From: Ramazzottius varieornatus
Lineage: Eukaryota; Animalia; Tardigrada
Assembly (NCBI GenBank): GCA_001949185.1
Contig: BDGG01000001.1
Location: forward strand, 7,576,149 to 7,640,148
Length of the DNA stretch: 64,000 nt
Direction of reading: 5' to 3'
Shown piece by piece: positions 1,005 through 15,893 of this stretch. The notes beneath the pieces were generated by a model. It was given only the letters and a program-made list of their open reading frames with translations, was not told the DNA's origin and ran no database searches. Position 1 is the first letter of the stretch; each line of letters begins with the position of its first letter. A program made the translations under genes and the position numbers.

Positions 1005-2012
1005 CAGTGGGCAAAGTTCCTGAAAAGTCTGGAGTCGTAGCGAAGAGGTACAGCTGATGAGATTTGAGAAGGGCAAGGGAGGGTTTCGGGTTTTTCTTGA
1101 AAATTCTACAGTTGCTGGAAATTGTCAGATTTTGGCGAATTTGGCGAATGAAGGAGCGCATGCCGAGCGCGGTACTAAACTACGACCTGCACCTACCTAC
1201 TGCAGCCCAACGCGCACCAGCGCACATAAATTACGTTATGCGGAGGAAGAAACTGCAACCCTCTTTTCTACGCTAACAAGAAACAACCGTGACAAAACAG
1301 AACGATACACATTAACTTAACTTCCCGAACTAGCTGACTACAGTTCCGCATTGTTACTTGCGCCGTCAGAAAATCACGAAATATGTAATTATGATAGTTT
1401 TACACAAGTAACCGTGTGGAACTGAAGTCTGATAATCGAACGACAACTTGATGGCAATTTCCTTATTTACTGAGCATGATCAAATTTTTTGTATAACTAG
1501 GCAGCATTGTACAATTCCATATGTTGAAGACTATTATCAAACGTGTCAAAGTCTTTCAAGCGTCTCATATTGAAAGCAAAACTCATCAGAACTGCTATAT
1601 TATTTTTCTTCATCTGATATCGCTTTTTCCCAGAGCCCCACGCAACTTACGGGGATGCTTCCGTTGTTGATGTGGTGCCTGTGAGACTAAACAACATCAA
1701 AATTTTTTTGCATCGCGTGCCGGCTTTTATAGGCCAGCTGACACCGTCTATGGGGTATTTTCCCACTTACCCCCTGGCAGCCATCTGGCACGTACGTACA
1801 GCCAGCTGGCTACGAGTGCAGGTTATGTCGTAGCTGCGGCCAATCGCTCCGTTATGCTCCGCCCACACTAGTCAACTGAAAATTTCCAGCAACTCTAGAA
1901 AATTCTCGGCCTTCACATGGCAAGCCCCGACCCCTACCCCTGGGTCACCCTTCCTAGATTTGCTCGACTATGCCTCTACGCCGTGACTCCGAACTTCCCA
2001 GGAACTTTGCCA
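1005..2012. mobile_element. Degenerate non-autonomous DNA element with ~140-bp terminal inverted repeats
   Basis: 1009-1140 (gggcaaagttcctgaaaagtctggagtc...ctacagttgctggaaatt) is an imperfect reverse complement of 1875-2012 (aatttccagcaactctag...gactccgaacttcccaggaactttgcca). Confidence 0.65.
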
Positions 2013-2392
2013 TAGAGCACGGAATCCTGCCGCATGCACTGTACTGTACTGTAGCTGTGCTGTGATACAGCAGAAAGCCATAGACTACCGTGCAGATGCA
2101 CCTACCGAAACCTAACAAAAATTAGTTTTCGGGCATTCGAACGTCAGCCGTCTCAGCTTTGCCGTACTTTAGGGCAACGTTCTCCAGGTTGACTACCGAT
2201 TTCACTGACTGAATTACAAACCACGTCAATACATCGGCGTTCCGCGCAGTTGCACCAGGTCAACGTTCATCTGCAGCGCAGCTGCCTAGCCACTGGGCAT
2301 GAAAGTTGTGCAGCAGAGCGCAGCGTACAGCGCCCTGGTAATGTGCGCAGCACAGTTACAGCGTACTTTTGGACCTGCGGCCCAGTGCTCTA
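2013..2392. mobile_element. hAT-type MITE, copy 1
   Basis: TIR TAGAGCAC...GTGCTCTA; perfect 8-bp TSD CTTTGCCA (2005-2012 and 2393-2400); inverted second copy at 15498-15893. Confidence 0.85.
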
Positions 2393-2954
2393 CTTTGCCA
2401 GACTCCATGTAGTGCCCATCAACTAATCAACCATATGTTCTGGCGGCAATCAAGCAAACCAAATGTGCAACACGATGTTCAGCAGCTCGTAAGTGCTGGC
2501 AGTTTTTATATTGCGAAATCCGGATTTCGAACCGGGATTTTAGTCTGACGTTTTCCTCGTCGGCGAAGTTTCTCAGCTTTCCTGGAAGATCGCTAGACTG
2601 GGTAAGAGATCCTTGTTGCTCCGGATCTGATGTTTAGCCTGAGCTGTTGCCTGTACCGTTACACTGTCACATCTCCCTTTAGGTTCGTATCGAGAGATCG
2701 CACGATGGAAGCCATTGGAACGAGTACCGACGCAGGAGTCATCCGCTGTCCTTCGCCGACGGATGAAAGTATCGGCGCGTCTTCATAGTTCGCACAGATG
2801 AAAGTCTCGCTCCTTGCGACTTCCGAACAATGGATGCTGCCGCGGTAGGTGAGCCAGCTGTCAAAGGAACGGATGTCCTTCGCGTCGATTTCTACCCGTG
2901 GAGGGTGAGTCTCGTTCTACCTGTTCTAGATTGTCAAATGTCAATCGAATGCCT

Positions 2955-3028
2955 TCTCGTGATGATCTGAAAATTTAGACAAGCATATGTCAGATTTATT
3001 GTGATGTCCTATCTCTTCGTCTGATACG
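2955..3028 (+). ncRNA. SNORD27: Box C/D snoRNA, SNORD27 (U27)/snR74-like, guide for 18S Am27/28
   Basis: C GTGATGA 2959; guide AGACAAGCATATG antisense to 18S CAUAUGCUUGUCU; D' CAGA 2991; C' GTGATGT 3001; D CTGA 3021. The D'+5 rule hits CAU[A]UGC. Confidence 0.88.
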
Positions 3029-3193
3029 TTAGCGGTTTCCCGTCACAAGGAAAGTATGGGCCACACTGTATCCAAGCCTTTCTTCTCAGGTTAATCTGAC
3101 GAGTCGGAAAGCTACCGTGGATTTTTGGCAGCTTGGGGCTGATCATGCAAGGTAAGAACCTCTTCCTTTCGTGATAGATGGAGGGGTGGAGGT

Positions 3194-3259
3194 TTGAATG
3201 ATGTTTTAATAGCTACTAGATGGACTGATTTTCTTGATGTTCACTCTAACACTGATGAT
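3194..3259 (+). ncRNA. Box C/D snoRNA with LSU guide (CCAUCUAGUAGCU) and possible 18S guide (UU[A]GAGUG, snR53-like)
   Basis: C ATGATGT 3198; AGCTACTAGATGG then D' CTGA 3225; C' TTGATGT; CACTCTAA then D CTGA 3252. Confidence 0.78.
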
Positions 3260-3425
3260 TATCATCTCGATGTTCGATTGATTATTGATTGGATTAGGTA
3301 TCCCGAGTAACGATTGTATGCTTCACAGAACTGAGTGACTCGGGCCATCCTTTCTGCGGATGTGTCAAAGCAGGAATGCCTGAGGTGAGCTAAAAGACTT
3401 CACAGAGTTTGAACTTTCTTGAGGT

Positions 3426-3487
3426 ATGAAATGACGAAAAACAGTTCTGCTACTGAATTTTCTGTCGATGATGCCAGCCTGACTCAG
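3426..3487 (+). ncRNA. SNORD38: Box C/D snoRNA, SNORD38 (U38)/snR61-like, LSU AGC[A]GAACUG
   Basis: C ATGACGA 3431; CAGTTCTGCTACTGA matches the U38 guide plus D'; C' ATGATGC; D CTGA 3479. Confidence 0.85.
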
Positions 3488-3640
3488 CCATCCTTCTGGT
3501 AAAATGTTGATTTGGACTTAGGACTCCTCGCTGTAAAGTAATCGTCTCGCTTGTTTCAGGAGATGGACGCCTGTGCTTGTAGTGGTAGGGAACGGATGCA
3601 GGACGAGGTGAGCCGCAGTTTGATAGGTTTCTGGTCTAGT

Positions 3641-3735
3641 GTGGCGTGACTGATGAGAAACCAATCTTTTTGTCTTCTTTCCCCGTATGACACAACCGTG
3701 GTTACACAACTTGATGATATTTCTGATGCAGCCAT
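3641..3735 (+). ncRNA. SNORD12: Box C/D snoRNA, SNORD12/snR190-like, LSU CGG[G]GAAAGAAGAC
   Basis: C CTGATGA 3650; 14-nt guide GTCTTCTTTCCCCG; D' ATGA 3687; C' TTGATGA; D CTGA 3723; terminal GGC/GCC stem. Confidence 0.85.
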
Positions 3736-3885
3736 GAGAAGCCAGACAGGCGCTCTGTGAAATGGGAAGATAATGCTATAATTGATTTTCTTGTGATTAT
3801 AGGACGGAGTGAGTCGGCGTTCTTGGTTTCTTTCGCTGACGGTAAGAAGTTTCGATCTCGAGTTCTGACGTTCAGATTTCGAATG

Positions 3886-3964
3886 TTTGAGTGATGAATT
3901 TCCTGCAATACTAAATCTTCCTTGTTGACCAAACATCACACGTTGGTCCGTGTTTCTGACGAGC
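3886..3964 (+). ncRNA. SNORD18: Box C/D snoRNA, SNORD18 (U18)-like, LSU AAACACGGACCAA
   Basis: C GTGATGA 3891; TTGGTCCGTGTTT then CTGA (3956), identical to the U18 guide. Confidence 0.85.
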
Positions 3965-4419
3965 CAGTCTAAAACTAAACATCCAAACTGTTACGTTGAT
4001 CGATAATGTATGAGAGCGTTTTTCCCCTTTCAGATTTCGGTAGAGAACTCTCCAGTCACTGCTTCCTCGGTGAATTGCCGTAAGTTTGGGTATTCCTTAA
4101 AGATAGAATGCTTCCCTTAAGCACTGATGGTTCATTCATGGCCGGAGGTCGTCGCGGGAAGGAGAGTAAAGTCTAGTCAGAACGATCGGGTGTGGCAGAG
4201 TGGATCGTTTCTGATCATATCTGCCTCAATACGTGCTGATACACTTCCGTAAGACCAATCTCGAATAGCTTTACCAAATGCCTTTGTTCCTGCTGCAGGA
4301 AGGAATCGACGGAAGCCTGGATTGGTCATCGAGTTGACGATCAAAAGACGCTGCCGGAAAAGCTATCTCGTAAGTGAGTTGTTTGGATCCTTCGATTGTT
4401 GCAACGTTCTGTGGAAATT

Positions 4420-4498
4420 TAGAAATGATGTTTAACCATCTTTCGGCTGCATGCGTCACGCTTCGACGATGAGGATGCTCTTTTTTCTCCCTGATCGA
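4420..4498 (+). ncRNA. Box C/D snoRNA, SNORD51/SNORD32/snR39-like, LSU CCGA[A]AGAUGGU
   Basis: C ATGATGT 4425; guide ACCATCTTTCGG with degenerate D' CTGC; D CTGA 4491. Confidence 0.75.
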
Positions 4499-4672
4499 CA
4501 GTTCCACAAGCTTTATTAGCGATCATTTCCGGCAGTATTCTGTGATTCATTTCTCTAACTTGCTAAATTTTGTTTCCAGGCGTACGTCGAAGAGAAAAAC
4601 GGGCCGAAGAAACAAGAAAGATCTCTTTCTCCGTAAGAATATCATTTTTCTTTTCAAACATGAACACAGTGT

Positions 4673-4746
4673 AGGATGTGATGCAAGCGTTTTACAACTG
4701 GAGTTGCGACGGTGACGGATATTTTGTCATAGTTACTCTGATCCTC
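4673..4746 (+). ncRNA. SNORD46: Box C/D snoRNA, SNORD46 (U46)/snR63-like, LSU AGUA[A]CUAUGAC
   Basis: C GTGATGC 4678; guide GTCATAGTTACT then D CTGA 4738; terminal stem AGGA/TCCT. Confidence 0.85.
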
Positions 4747-4911
4747 TATCCTTGTTCGGAAGAAACATTACAGCTGTAGCACCCGTCCACCGCGAGAAAG
4801 TGAAGTTGATATCTCTTCCCGCAGGTCGAAACAAGCTTGGACGGATCTCTCGAGTCTGGATATTGAATGGTAAGAGATGACTTTCGACGGCCGAAGGTCC
4901 GTACAGAATAT

Positions 4912-4998
4912 GAGCATTGAATGATGAGTGTCCCGTGTTTATGAGAGTCTCTTCAGGCTCTGCTGATTACGTTATGACGTCGCTAAACTGACTTGCTC
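4912..4998 (+). ncRNA. Box C/D snoRNA, snR38/SNORD1-like, LSU UA[G]CGACGUC
   Basis: C ATGATGA 4921; GACGTCGCTA before D CTGA 4988; stem GAGCA/TGCTC; second antisense TCCCGTGTT (18S AACACGGGA) before an ATGA D'-like box. Confidence 0.8.
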
Positions 4999-5179
4999 TC
5001 ACCGATCACTTCGTAGCATACAGTTCTTCAAATCGTTGACCTAACTTGCGTCTCGTATCTTCGTAGGTCCGCGTTTCGCGTTCGACTAGTCTTGATAGAC
5101 GATTTAACGTCACCGCGGTGGACCTTCCTTTGGCAATAGGTGGGTAAATTGGGGGCGTTGTGAGTCGCTGCTTGTGTTG

Positions 5180-5325
5180 CTGACGAGCTGCGGTTGTGAT
5201 ATTCATGAGGAGTCAGCTGCAGCACTATGCTTCGTTCGAGGCACTTTGTGGCGCTATGGCGTTACCTCTATGGAAAATCAGAATGGCTTTCAAGAGTCGT
5301 TGGGCTTTGGTTTTCTGAAAGCTCG
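5180..5325 (+). ncRNA. Candidate intronic box C/D snoRNA (orphan)
   Basis: C-like ATGAGGA 5205 or CTGACGA 5180; D CTGA 5315 preceded by GGCTTTGGTTTT (pairs with 18S GAAACCAAAGUC using G-U pairs); CGAGCT/AGCTCG stem. Confidence 0.35.
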
Positions 5326-5889
5326 ACGTAGTTGACAGTCAGACAATGAAGTCAACTAATAGCGGTTTCGTTTTTCAGGGCTTGAGGACGATGGTCCGTG
5401 GTTTGCTCACTTACGGTAAGCGGGAGACATCAACAGTCTTGTTGAGTTCTATGGAGAACCGTGCTGAACTTTTGGTGAGAAAACTCTTTCCTGAGGCTCT
5501 CTGATGCCGGGAGTGTGGAGCTCTCGGCCTCTCTGAAGTGCGATAGTATGGGTGAATGGCAGTTAGCGCTGACTGCCATCCACTCATACTGTTGGTACTC
5601 AGTGTGGGATCAGGTCAGGACTTCTGATGTGCATAGACGGAAGTCGTTCCGGGGATGCCAGCTAGAGCTTGAAGAGAATGACATACATCTCTCGTTGCAG
5701 GTAGGGCAAGCCGTTCTTCAATTTGTGGCTGAACATATGCAGTTTGGGGAACTACAGACGAGGCACAGAAGGGCTCCACGAGAAGAGCCACGGTTCTCGT
5801 CTTCACCTCATGGGTCACCAACCCACCGGAAGTTGTGGTAAGCAGTACGCTCCAGATTAACTGTTGAATTTTGTCTGGACTGTAAGTTA

Positions 5890-6002
5890 GAGCCGTTGTG
5901 ATGAGCAACTTCTCTGAGGCTTCTTGACGCCATGCCCAGAAATGGGGGACCCCTTGGCCTCTCAGGAATGTCCACTGTTGTTACAAACTTTTACTGAGGC
6001 TT
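5890..6002 (+). ncRNA. Box C/D snoRNA with bulged complementarity to the 18S 3' region (UAAAAGUCGUAACAA)
   Basis: C GTGATGA 5898; D CTGA 5994; terminal stem AGCC/GGCT; TTGTTACAAACTTTTA upstream of D. Confidence 0.65.
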
Positions 6003-6152
6003 TGAAGAAGGTCGCTGTTGAAAGCAAGAACCGTTGAAGTAATTGAAGTTACCTCTTCTTCTCGATTTCAGATCAGGGAGTGTTGGGTCGAATGGAGCAA
6101 ACAGTAACAAGGCACGTCTCTCTCTCTTGTTAGGAAAGCTGTTGCGGGAATA

Positions 6153-6216
6153 TTGTTTCGATGATGAAAAGACTGCGAAATCAAGCTACAGTTGGGCAGA
6201 CATCGGTCTGAACAAC
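6153..6216 (+). ncRNA. Short candidate box C/D snoRNA
   Basis: C ATGATGA 6161; D CTGA 6208; stem TGTT/AACA; target unclear. Confidence 0.45.
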
Positions 6217-6592
6217 CATGCTGCGGCTGTAGCTGGTGGAAGTTCCGCGACGGCTGTCTGAGAATGCTAGTCTTATTGATGACTTTGAAAGCAGAAATTG
6301 GAAAACGATCAGCGCTTTTTACGAAATCTTTACTTTACAGGAAGTGTGTCGGAGGAGACACTCGAGAAGCCGGAGGGAAAAGTAACGAAGATTAACCAAA
6401 GAATATTACTAATTTTTCCAGTCTTGCACTCACAGTTCGATTTCTATTTGAACTTTGGTGGAGTGTAACGAAATTGATTTATCTTTTTCATGGAAGTTAA
6501 CAGAAAGCAGAAATGAACTTTCAAATCAAAATGGATGAGAGCACGAGTTGTGTATCCTGCATAAAAAGGGAAACTTCAGAATTGACATCTGT

Positions 6593-8636
6593 TCAGAAAT
6601 CTAGGAAAAAACCAGGCTTTTTCGTTTCCTTTTTGTCGTGTTGCTTTCCGAATCCAGGAACGTTTCCTTGGTTCTTCTCTTCCGGCTTGTCAACAGCCTT
6701 CTGTTTTGGCGGTCCGAAGTTCAGGAACCCGAAGCCTTCATCTTCAGAGTCGGCGGTCGAGGTTTCTGAATGCGCAGGACTGGCTGATCCGAAACTGAAT
6801 CCACTGAAACCTTCGAAGGCTTTGTCTTTGTGCTTCTCCTTATCTACTTCCTTCACTGGTTCTTTCTCTCTCGAACGACTAGTCGAAGTCGGCATGTCGA
6901 AGTTCATCTCTTTTAGGACTGCAGGGACAAACGGGCGAGCTACGGGACTTTTCTCGGAAACGGAAGGAAAGTTGCTGACAGCGGGAAGTTTCGCGGGAGG
7001 AAGCTTAACAGAAGGAAGAGCTAGGTTCTGAGAAGAAGGTCGAGCGAAGTTATCGAAATTGTTCTTGTCTGGAAAGTGTTTTTCTTCTCGAGGAACTTCG
7101 GCGGTTTCTTCGATGACTTGCTCCATATTCTCTTGGGCTTGTTCCTTCTTCTCGAGTTCTTCGGCAGCGGGTTCTGCAAGATCCATAACGTCGAAGGGAG
7201 CTCTGTGGACTTCATCGACCTGCATGTCTTGCTCGGCTTCAACAGCTTCGTTCTGGACACGGTTCATGGCTGGCGACTGGTCGCCTTCAATCTCACTAGT
7301 CATTGCCACTTCTTTGTCCAGCTCGGTGACTTCCCTGTTAACGACTGTAGAAGTGGTGGTTTGTGTGGTCTCCTCTCTTAGGTTTTCTGGTTCAGTTTCC
7401 ATGTGTTGTATCGTGGAAGTGCGGTCAACCAAACTCTTCTCGGCACTGAAGAAAAGAAAAGAGTGTAAACATATTTGTGAGCTCGGCAAACCAACTCAAC
7501 CAGATCGTTTTCCCAAGTGACGCACGTCCTAGCTGAAATCGGAGAAAACGTGCGCCACTCGAGAGCGAATTTGTCGAGTTTGTTTGCCGAGTTCGCAGTT
7601 TTTCTAAAAGCGGAAAGACTTCGGGTTCATTCGAGGAGGAACTCCAAAAGCAGGAAAGAACTTACAAACGATTGCAGAAGTCGCGATATGGCTGAGTGCT
7701 AAGTTCCGGCGAGCTCTCTGTAAAGAAAACCAAACTTCAGTTCTTTGGTGATACTTGGAGTTCGAAATACGAGCGATAGGGAAAAAAACGGCTCTGTTTC
7801 CTACCGAAAGCTCCTTGGCCATGTCCGACGCCTTGTTCCAAATTGCTGGCCTTCATCTTGCCAAGCTTGGTCACTTTCTGGAGCAAGTTGCGCTCTAGTT
7901 CCAGGTTGGCCAGCTTCTGGGCTTCAGGAAAGGATTGGTACTTGTCTACATTGGCTTCCAACCTCCTTTCCATCTCGCTCCGTTCGGCCAACTTTCGCTT
8001 TCTGCAAAAACAAAACAGTAACGTATTCGAGCTGACGTTTAGCTAACTTGCCAGGAAGAAGTTCGTTCGTCATCGCTTACTCATCCTTTGCGTTTTGCTC
8101 TTCTTGCAACTGGATCTTGATGTTCAAGGCGTCGATCTGATGGTAATAGTTACGAAGACTTTCCCGACGTCTGTGGAACAAGATAACAGTACGATGGACG
8201 TTGGATGACAATTCAGGAGGCATTCAAGAAAGGCATACCGTTGAACTTCCGTCTCTAACGCTTTGGCCGTTCCAGCCAGCTCCGCACTTCGTATGGCAGC
8301 TACCGCATTTGCTTCTCGTTTCAGAGTGATACGTTTGCCTTGTTCCTGAAGCTGAGCTTTCTTCTCTACAAGTAAAAAGTCATCAGAAACTGAAGGCATG
8401 GGCAGGAGGAAGGTTACAGGCGTTTGACTTGGAGGAAGTTGTACAAACCTTGGATCAGTCGTTCGAGTTGGGCTTCTCGCTGTCCAGCTGCTTTGTAGTC
8501 CCCCTCTGCAAACGAGACAAACTCTTTCAAGCTACAAGTCCGATATACAACACGAAAGGAATTGCAGAGTCGGTTTAAAATCAAGGAAGTTAAAGAGGAA
8601 CTTACCAATTGTTCGGATGAGGTCTCCCAGCGCCAT
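6593..8636 (-). CDS. Multi-exon protein with N-terminal coiled coil, acidic/disordered middle and Phe-rich C-terminal tail (SIX6OS1/SYP-4-like architecture)
   Basis: Spliced reading MALGDLIRTIEGDYKAAGQREAQLERLIQEKKAQLQEQ...RRESLRNYYHQIDALNIKIQLQEEQ...EAQKLANLELERNLL; last exon ~7445-6593 ends FEGFSGFSFG...EGFGFLNF...PGFFLDF*. Exons between ~7870 and 7445 not resolved. Confidence 0.65.
7477..7597. repeat. Intronic GGCGCAC palindrome family copy
   Basis: AAGTGACGCAC-N24-GTGCGCCACT within GAGCTCGGCAAAC...GTTTGCCGAGTTC arms. Confidence 0.8.
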
Positions 8637-9699
8637 TGTTAATGTTAAAACTCTTGAACGACCTTCTGGCAAACTGTTGCTTACGGAAGACGGAAGAGCG
8701 CCTTAAGTAGCCAGTTGACCAGAGGAGAATTAAGGAAAACGAACGAAGGAAAAGGAATTCCAACGGAAGAGCTAGAGAATGTGCAAGAATAAAAGATCTT
8801 TCAAATTTCCGACAGGTTGGCGGGCGACAGCTGCCGTTCGTTCTGGTTTCCGGTTACGTCCTGCGTCAACAAAACAGCGTCAACAGTCATGGGTTCTTGC
8901 GCGTGACGTTAACGAGCCCCACAGCACGGCCTTGATGGAGCCAAGAGCTACTGTACCAGCTAACTCAAATAGTCGCGGTCCGTAACCACCATTGGACAAT
9001 TCGTCCATTGCACGACACCGTAGCCTAACCTATGGGAGCGGTTCACATTCTGACTGGTACCTTAAAACAATATTCGGTGATCCATTCGTATGGAAGTCAC
9101 CGTCACGAGTCAGAGGTCACGGCTCGCGACGAGTTTATCGTCACGCCAAATACCAGGAAAAACTGCTGGGATGCTGGCTCGATGAAGAACTGTACGTGAG
9201 AGGCAAACAGTGAACGCCAATGTAAGGTAAAGGTAAGAATATGGTTTGATCGAACAATGTTTTTTCCTGATGTGACTGCCGATACTGAAACATCGATATC
9301 ACTGAGAACAGATTAGACAGCACCCTCAAAACACCCGAGCAACCCCAGCTCACAAAGCGGATCCTCGCATGGTTCTCCACACCATCTCGGCTTTATCAGT
9401 ATTGTTATGACCACTCTTGTGAGTGGGAGCCGAGACAGCGAGACCAGAATAACAACGATTCATTTCATCTCCGCGAAAAGTAAGCTCGCTCATCCAGCGC
9501 AATGCACAGAGTAATTTTGTAAGTGGGCATTTAACAACGAGAAAAACAACAAGAACAACTGATGAGGAAGCCAGAAAATTTAGGAGACTAATACTGTAAA
9601 TCACACGGCAAATTTTTCATATCCCGACTTTTGAAGATAGCCCAGGTGGATTCCACCTTAGTTTTGAGAAACAAATCATGGATGACAAGCTTATTCATT

Positions 9700-15497: not shown

Positions 15498-15893
15498 TAG
15501 AGCACTGGGCAGCAGATCCAAAAGTACGCTGTACGCTGTGCTGTGCTGCATAACTTTCACGCCCAGTGGCTAAGCAGCTGTGCTGGAAATGCACGTTGAC
15601 CTGGTGCAACTGCGCGGAACGCTCATATATTGACGTGGTTTGTAATTCAGTCGGCGAAATCGGTAGTCAACCTGGAGAACGTTACCCTGAAGTGCGGCAA
15701 AGCTGAGACGGGTGACGTTCGAATACCCAAAAACTGTAATTTTTGTTAGGTTTTGGTAGGTACATCTGCGCGGTAGTCTATGGCTTTCTGCTGTGCTGTG
15801 CCACAAATTTCGTCAGTTTACGCGCTACAGCTGTGCTGTGCTGCAGCACAGCTACACTGCAGTACTGTGCATGCGGCCAGATTCCGTGCTCTA
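15498..15893. mobile_element. hAT-type MITE, copy 2 (inverted relative to 2013-2392)
   Basis: Same TAGAGCAC TIRs and colinear internal sequence. Confidence 0.85.

Follow-up and report, generated by a model that had tools for sequence, protein, structure and literature searches.

A putative non-coding host gene for intronic snoRNAs in the tardigrade Ramazzottius varieornatus and its partial paralogue in the same genome

Among the best described 'inside-out' genes are the mammalian hosts UHG/SNHG1, GAS5 and U17HG/SNHG3, which consist of many short exons without conserved coding capacity and carry one small nucleolar RNA (snoRNA) per intron. In these genes the snoRNAs are conserved and the exons are not, and the box C/D snoRNAs keep a constant distance to the 3' splice site that follows them, a position linked to the splicing-dependent assembly of the small nucleolar ribonucleoprotein (snoRNP; PMC8162545). 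In the fly, 42% of the expressed C/D snoRNAs reside in long non-coding RNAs (lncRNAs), represented by seven Uhg genes (PMC11014333), and Drosophila Uhg4 is the host of seven snoRNAs (PMC9710044). The published annotation of the tardigrade Ramazzottius varieornatus predicted only tRNAs and ribosomal RNAs (rRNAs) among the non-coding RNAs (PMC5034306), and our literature search found no paper on tardigrade snoRNAs. Here we describe a locus on the plus strand of a 64,000-nucleotide (nt) stretch of R. varieornatus contig BDGG01000001.1 (hereafter the window, whose numbering is used throughout), which extends from 2551 to about 6440. An earlier note on this DNA had suggested an 'inside-out' gene with its function in the introns. 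The regular geometry of the locus, guides that match the organism's own rRNA and a paralogous array that retains only the snoRNA blocks bear this suggestion out, and we propose, with a probability of roughly 0.85, that the locus is a non-protein-coding multi-snoRNA host gene.

The putative tardigrade gene resembles the mammalian hosts in its numerous short exons lacking conserved coding capacity, in the single snoRNA per intron, in the conservation of snoRNAs but not exons, and in the fixed placement of C/D snoRNAs ahead of the 3' splice site. It differs from them in its combination of snoRNAs, in having near-minimal introns (175-285 nt) and one H/ACA RNA among the C/D RNAs, and in that another host gene of this genome carries a duplicate of part of the array. 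The Drosophila Uhg lncRNA hosts show the same design in another panarthropod. The design is already well known, having been described since UHG and GAS5 and being common in flies, and is not conceptually new. The value of the locus lies rather in annotation and in a testable list of modification sites: R. varieornatus, which is studied for its stress tolerance, thereby gains 11-12 snoRNA genes and about ten rRNA modification sites that can be tested. The statement that the vertebrate counterparts of these snoRNAs all sit in different hosts is mostly right, but human SNORD38 and SNORD46 both reside in RPS8.

Splice sites read from the sequence divide the putative unit into 15 exons and 14 GT..AG introns, in agreement with the regular chain of plus-strand donors and acceptors with short exons that had been noticed earlier. 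The introns are 81-285 nt long and the exons, the last one excluded, 32-222 nt. Their positions, all on the plus strand, are as follows:

Introns 1-5: 2602-2682, 2905-3089, 3152-3328, 3385-3559, 3608-3802.
Introns 6-10: 3842-4033, 4080-4298, 4370-4579, 4633-4824, 4870-5066.
Introns 11-14: 5140-5378, 5416-5700, 5838-6071, 6104-6340.

All 14 acceptors are pyrimidine-rich and end in YAG, and 12 of the 14 donors read GTRAG, the exceptions being introns 11 (GTGGGT) and 14 (GTAACA). Twelve of the introns carry one sense-strand snoRNA each, that in intron 12 being degenerate, and ten of these (introns 2-6, 8-10, 13 and 14) hold a canonical box C/D snoRNA. The placement of these RNAs is strikingly uniform: from the 5' splice site to the start of box C there are 42-60 nt (mean 51.3±5.8), and from the end of box D to the 3' splice site 65-85 nt (mean 75.9, standard deviation 5.2, n=11 including intron 12). 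In 10 of 11 cases a GTRAG is found 42-60 nt upstream of box C, while the chance of one in such a 19-nt slot is about 0.04 per case; hence the splice chain is not a chance pattern. In mammals the distance from C/D snoRNAs to the 3' splice site is 70-80 nt. The constant arrangement at this locus (about 51 nt, snoRNA, about 76 nt) suggests that the mammalian splicing-coupled position rule is also valid in tardigrades.

To assign guides, the region was matched against the organism's own rDNA (18S, 5.8S and 28S on contig C17), whose numbering is used for all targets, and the targets were mapped to their yeast and human equivalents via the Rfam rRNA models. In the ten canonical C/D RNAs, the C box deviates from RUGAUGA at one position at most, the D box is a perfect CUGA, and the two are 52-101 nt apart. 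The snoRNAs and snoRNA-like RNAs of the array, with their predicted guides, are:

2954..3029, plus strand: intron 2 C/D snoRNA; box C GTGATGA at 2959, D' CAGA at 2991, D CTGA at 3021; 13-nt guide to 18S A28.
3193..3260, plus strand: intron 3 C/D snoRNA; box C ATGATGT at 3198, D' CTGA at 3225, D at 3252; 13-nt guide to 28S U1166.
3426..3487, plus strand: intron 4 C/D snoRNA; box C ATGACGA at 3431, D' CTGA at 3453, D at 3479; 10-nt guide to 28S A1383.
3645..3731, plus strand: intron 5 C/D snoRNA; box C CTGATGA at 3650, D' ATGA at 3687, D at 3723; 14-nt guide to 28S G2774.
3886..3964, plus strand: intron 6 C/D snoRNA; box C GTGATGA at 3891, D at 3956; 13-14-nt guide to 28S A839.
4106..4246, plus strand: intron 7 H/ACA snoRNA; 5' hairpin, H box AGAGTA, 3' hairpin, ACA at 4241-4243.
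4420..4499, plus strand: intron 8 C/D snoRNA; box C ATGATGT at 4425, D' CTGC at 4447, D at 4491; 12-nt guide to 28S A1043.
4673..4746, plus strand: intron 9 C/D snoRNA; box C GTGATGC at 4678, D at 4738; 12-13-nt guide to 28S A2635.
4916..4996, plus strand: intron 10 C/D snoRNA; box C ATGATGA at 4921, D at 4988; 10-nt guide to 28S G3249, doubtful.
5470..5632, plus strand: intron 12 long C/D-like RNA; degenerate box C GTGAGAA at 5475, D CTGA at 5624.
5891..6004, plus strand: intron 13 C/D snoRNA; box C GTGATGA at 5898, D at 5994; well formed, C-to-D span 100 nt, with an internal hairpin.
6156..6266, plus strand: intron 14 C/D snoRNA; box C ATGATGA at 6161, D' CTGA at 6208, D at 6258; 5-bp terminal stem.

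The count of about 9-11 box C/D snoRNAs given in the earlier note is matched by the ten canonical ones, but the RNA of intron 7 belongs to the H/ACA class and not to the C/D class.

The strongest evidence for reading these sequences as a host gene comes from a DNA search of the organism's own genome, which recovered a second, colinear array containing the snoRNA blocks of introns 2-9 at 78-97% identity. On the reverse strand of contig C12 (150000-159999) the counterparts of the intron 2-7 snoRNAs follow one another in unchanged order, and C109, an unplaced contig of 1.9 kb, has those of introns 8 and 9. In each case the alignment begins a few nucleotides before box C and ends a few nucleotides after box D (in intron 7, after the ACA), while the intron flanks and exons of the two arrays are unalignable; in this within-genome comparison the exons fit the paralogous array no better than shuffled exons do. 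The conservation within the blocks is itself uneven, since the boxes and guides are identical at 176 of 190 positions (92.6%) versus 256 of 330 (77.6%) in the rest of the snoRNAs (Fisher p = 5e-6). The paralogue of the intron 2 RNA, at 85% identity, shows a canonical CTGA as its D' box; that of intron 3 preserves the guide at 100% and is 79% identical over the remainder; those of introns 4, 5 and 6 are 78%, 87% and 93% identical, respectively; that of intron 7 aligns over a 136-nt block at 89% identity, with ATA in place of ACA; and the C109 copies of introns 8 and 9 are 97% and 88% identical. For the snoRNAs of introns 10, 13 and 14, the genome yielded no further copy at the search sensitivity used.

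Based on these alignments, introns 2-9 represent an old segmental duplication of part of the C12/C109 host-gene array. As the neutral sequence has diverged past alignment, purifying selection must have acted on both copies of each snoRNA. Selective conservation of the snoRNA blocks is the signature of an 'inside-out' gene, and it also speaks against a conserved protein encoded by the exons. Together the two arrays, which have only the intronic snoRNAs in common, offer a clean within-genome example of 'inside-out' selection. This grouping of snoRNAs, which the earlier note described as apparently independently assembled, is not unique, since part of it duplicates another array in the same genome. 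The C12 array (about 1400-7200 of the reverse complement) contains further guides before and after the shared block that are absent from the window, such as TGTTTCGCTCTCTCT followed by CTGA, directed at 28S 390-404, and CTCCTACTCGTT followed by CTGA, directed at 28S 1620-1631. The C12 locus has 28 antisense rRNA matches of at least 11 nt versus 7 on the other strand. Given the extra guides and this strand bias, the C12 array looks host-gene-like in its own right and may well be a larger host gene.

The guides provide a second line of support. Between 2900 and 6300, exact antisense matches to rRNA of at least 12 nt number six on the plus strand and none on the minus strand, whereas the window-wide density predicts about 1.2 per strand; at a length of at least 13 nt, 5 of the 12 matches in the window fall in this interval. 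The earlier report of 10-14-nt antisense rRNA segments is thereby substantiated: all six of the 12-14-nt guides are placed beside a D or D' box, ending 0-2 nt before it, against a chance expectation of 0.02 for guides in this register (about 22 guide slots). In total, seven snoRNAs form 10-14 Watson-Crick pairs with conserved rRNA, six of them over 12-14 nt, and two more have 10 bp to doubtful sites. On this basis, methylation is predicted with good support at 18S A28 and at 28S A839, A1043, U1166, A1383, A2635 and G2774, and less certainly at 28S G3249, C3303 and A1513. In no snoRNA of the array does the other guide slot show a convincing complement to rRNA. The guide at box D of intron 8 (4474-4490, plus strand) can pair with 28S 2772-2783 through 10 Watson-Crick and 2 G-U pairs, overlapping the target site of intron 5; it is not conserved in the C109 copy and is either new or a chance match.

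Six of the targets coincide with conserved modification sites. The map of the large subunit (LSU) was calibrated on the yeast sites A2220, A2256, A2280/81, G2288, U2417 and U2421 (offset 6), on the A loop, U2921-G2922-Psi2923 (offset 9), and on G2815 in GGGAUAAC. 18S A28 is the SNORD27/snR74 site, and on the calibrated LSU map 28S A1383 is the snR61/SNORD38 site, 28S G2774 the equivalent of yeast G2395 (snR190/SNORD12), 28S A839 that of yeast A649 (U18, SNORD18), 28S A1043 that of yeast A817 (snR60/SNORD51-32) and 28S A2635 that of yeast A2256 (snR63/SNORD46). The families named in the earlier note for these six snoRNAs (SNORD27, SNORD38, SNORD12, SNORD18, SNORD51/32 and SNORD46) thus agree with the targets mapped through the Rfam rRNA models. 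The seventh call, snR38/SNORD1, does not hold. The intron 10 guide is directed at 28S G3249 in the context UAG*CGACGUC, at approximately yeast G2848. The target of snR38 is found 33 nt further upstream, in GGGAUAAC; as no sequence in the region is antisense to that site, this identity was rejected. We know of no yeast or human modification at the G3249 position. Likewise, 28S U1166, the target of intron 3 (context CCAU*CUAGUAGC), has no yeast or human counterpart that we are aware of, and the same is true of 28S C3303 and A1513. A literature search by sequence string for the targets of the intron 3 and intron 10 guides returned only primers and unrelated papers.

Rfam supports several of these family relationships below its gathering scores. 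The search against Rfam proposed in the earlier note gave nothing at gathering score, but with E-value thresholds the ten best snoRNA-family matches in the region are all on the plus strand. Intron 2 matches SNORD27 (RF00086) at 35.2 bits (E 0.0017, gathering score 52), intron 4 matches snR61 at 27.4 bits (gathering score 45; snR61 and SNORD38 form clan CL00051), intron 9 matches snoR442 at 26.1 bits, intron 8 matches ceN109 at 22.2 bits and intron 6 matches SNORD18 (RF00093) at 15.1 bits (gathering score 41), with the guide GGUCCGUGUUUCUGA common to both. In all five of these alignments (SNORD27, snR61, SNORD18, ceN109 and snoR442) the guide sequence is shared with the array, and the weak matches of intron 5 to DdR2 (19.5 bits) and snR107 (17.8 bits) lie over its guide as well. 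The RNAs of the array resemble SNORD27, the snR61/SNORD38 clan and SNORD18 in their identical or near-identical guides and in the order of their boxes; however, the U18-type guide is situated at box D in the tardigrade intron 6, whereas it is at D' in the SNORD18 family model.

In intron 7, the 3' pocket of the H/ACA RNA, 14 nt from the ACA, pairs over 4+6 bp around 28S U3324, which maps to yeast Psi2923 in the A loop; this RNA is predicted to guide a pseudouridine at U3324. In a consensus fold with its paralogue, all four stem substitutions (4/4) keep the pair, and there is a weak match to the H/ACA family snoR74 (21.9 bits, gathering score 44). The long RNA of intron 12 departs from the C-box consensus with its GTGAGAA, and its D box ends 73 nt before the 3' splice site. 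Alignment relates it to the RNA of intron 13, its fold has a z-score of -5.4, and no target was found for it in the organism's own rRNA. It contains an inserted, near-perfect palindrome of 48 nt (5544-5591, plus strand; stem of about 22 bp, loop of 4 nt), which weakly matches Rfam mir-4859 (21.6 bits, threshold 100) and has no second genomic copy at BLAST sensitivity; this palindrome could be a small insertion or a hairpin RNA. Two further introns complete the inventory:

2602..2682, plus strand: intron 1, 81 nt, no recognisable snoRNA.
5140..5378, plus strand: intron 11, 239 nt, donor GTGGGT, no recognisable snoRNA and no convincing rRNA complement found.

If the locus is a host gene of this kind, RNA polymerase II would transcribe about 3.9 kb of the plus strand and the spliceosome would remove the 14 short introns. 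The snoRNP core proteins would assemble on the embedded snoRNA of 12 introns during splicing, and the debranched introns would then be shortened by exonucleases until only the protected snoRNA was left. The joined exons would form a by-product RNA whose probable fate is nonsense-mediated decay (NMD). The expected products are ten canonical C/D guides for fibrillarin-dependent 2'-O-methylation, one degenerate C/D-like RNA from intron 12 and one H/ACA pseudouridylation guide from intron 7. Transcription, splicing, accumulation of snoRNAs and modification of rRNA by this locus are thus all predictions from its organization.

Several observations weigh against this interpretation. At gathering scores, Rfam has no match in the whole 64-kb window. 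The terminal stems of the C/D RNAs are short (1-5 bp), although the 5 bp counted for intron 13 become 7 bp in the predicted fold. Introns 1 and 11 are apparently empty and the RNA of intron 12 looks degenerate. The duplexes behind the targets of introns 10, 13 and 14 are either 10 bp long or imperfect: since about 0.36 ten-bp duplexes are expected by chance, those of introns 10 and 14 are uncertain, the latter being a 10-nt guide to 28S C3303 in a variable hairpin loop, and the sole target found for intron 13, 28S A1513, is a doubtful one that involves 2 G-U pairs and 1 mismatch. Finally, the splice model contains a 160-codon open frame across exons 3-11, contrary to the earlier statement that there was no coherent open reading frame (ORF). 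It includes the following ORF:

3145..5136, plus strand: 145-codon ATG ORF in exons 3-11, stop in exon 11, judged non-coding.

This frame is the principal reason to consider that the spliced RNA might also be an mRNA for a 145-aa protein, as in the host genes that encode ribosomal proteins, given that only about 1% of shuffles of the spliced model reach such a length (p ~0.01). Yet an open stretch of this length occurs in about 10% of the 983-nt windows of the genome. Six short upstream ORFs precede the ORF, which uses the seventh ATG of the model, and four exon junctions separate its stop from the last exon, an NMD configuration. Its codon score in frame (0.107) is below that of one of the other frames (0.162) and within the range of introns, a weak measure, as the training set of the window's long open frames is contaminated. 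Exon-by-exon scans gave no Pfam match, and the exons have no likeness to the paralogous array. We accordingly regard a bifunctional host as unlikely, and its specific form, in which exons 3-11 are translated into a lineage-specific 145-aa protein besides the 12 snoRNAs, with a frame kept open across nine introns that bear snoRNAs, as slightly more doubtful still. The snoRNAs might alternatively be processed without splicing, as a polycistronic precursor or as independent genes cut by endonucleases, with the GT..AG pairs being incidental; clustered snoRNAs are processed in this way in other eukaryotes, such as plants and yeast. However, donors and acceptors flank every snoRNA at 51±6 and 76±5 nt, which is extremely improbable without selection for splicing, and by eye acceptor-like sites recur about 70-77 nt after box D in four of the six C12 copies, so that we consider this scenario very improbable.

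The paralogous array raises the further question of whether the copy in the window is a redundant duplicate that is drifting towards loss while the C12/C109 array does the work. Signs of decay can indeed be pointed out, namely the off-consensus D' box CAGA of intron 2 (CTGA in the paralogue), the C box ATGACGA of intron 4, the degenerate C box and palindrome insertion of intron 12, and the empty intron 11. Against this, the snoRNA blocks are 78-97% identical with their boxes and guides best kept, amid flanks and exons that have diverged past alignment, a pattern that calls for continued purifying selection on both copies after the duplication; moreover, at the sensitivity of the search the genome holds no other copy of the intron 10, 13 and 14 snoRNAs. 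Decay is, in our estimate, the least probable of these alternatives, and a functional non-coding host gene is the reading that we retain.

The ends of the putative gene can be approximated from its surroundings. At its 5' side two elements, recognized by sequence only, may mark the promoter and the transcription start, the second having been put forward in the earlier note as a possible 5'-terminal oligopyrimidine (5'TOP) start:

2505..2512, plus strand: TATA-like TTTATATT, 39-46 nt upstream of the pyrimidine run; possible promoter.
2551-2558, plus strand: pyrimidine run TTTTCCTC, whose first letter is T, not C.

At the 3' side, no AATAAA was seen in 6341-6560. The downstream neighbour is a minus-strand gene (ORF 6593-7489, further exons to about 8640), which is convergent on the host locus. 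Its position implies that the host unit ends at about 6400-6560, and its opposite orientation implies that the array is not the untranslated region (UTR) of a plus-strand coding gene. This multi-exon neighbour (6593-8640) has a terminal ORF of 298 aa without a Pfam match; the 3' ends of the two genes should lie within about 150 nt of each other, and their transcripts may overlap.

A few antisense rRNA matches outside the gene were considered as snoRNA guides and rejected. Those at 1187-1197 and 2097-2110 (minus strand) are without boxes, and those at 2380-2391 (minus strand) and 15499-15512 (plus strand) lack boxes as well and belong to copies of a dispersed repeat. This repeat, of about 200 nt, is present at 2190-2392 (minus strand) and 15499-15680 (plus strand), the first copy lying directly upstream of the putative promoter, and its 12-14-nt antisense match is a guide-like complement of 28S 2571-2584. 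At a larger scale, the interval 2001-8000 has the strongest plus-strand excess of T over A and of G over C in the window (AT skew -0.09 to -0.11, GC skew +0.05 to +0.10), and these skews are compatible with plus-strand transcription.

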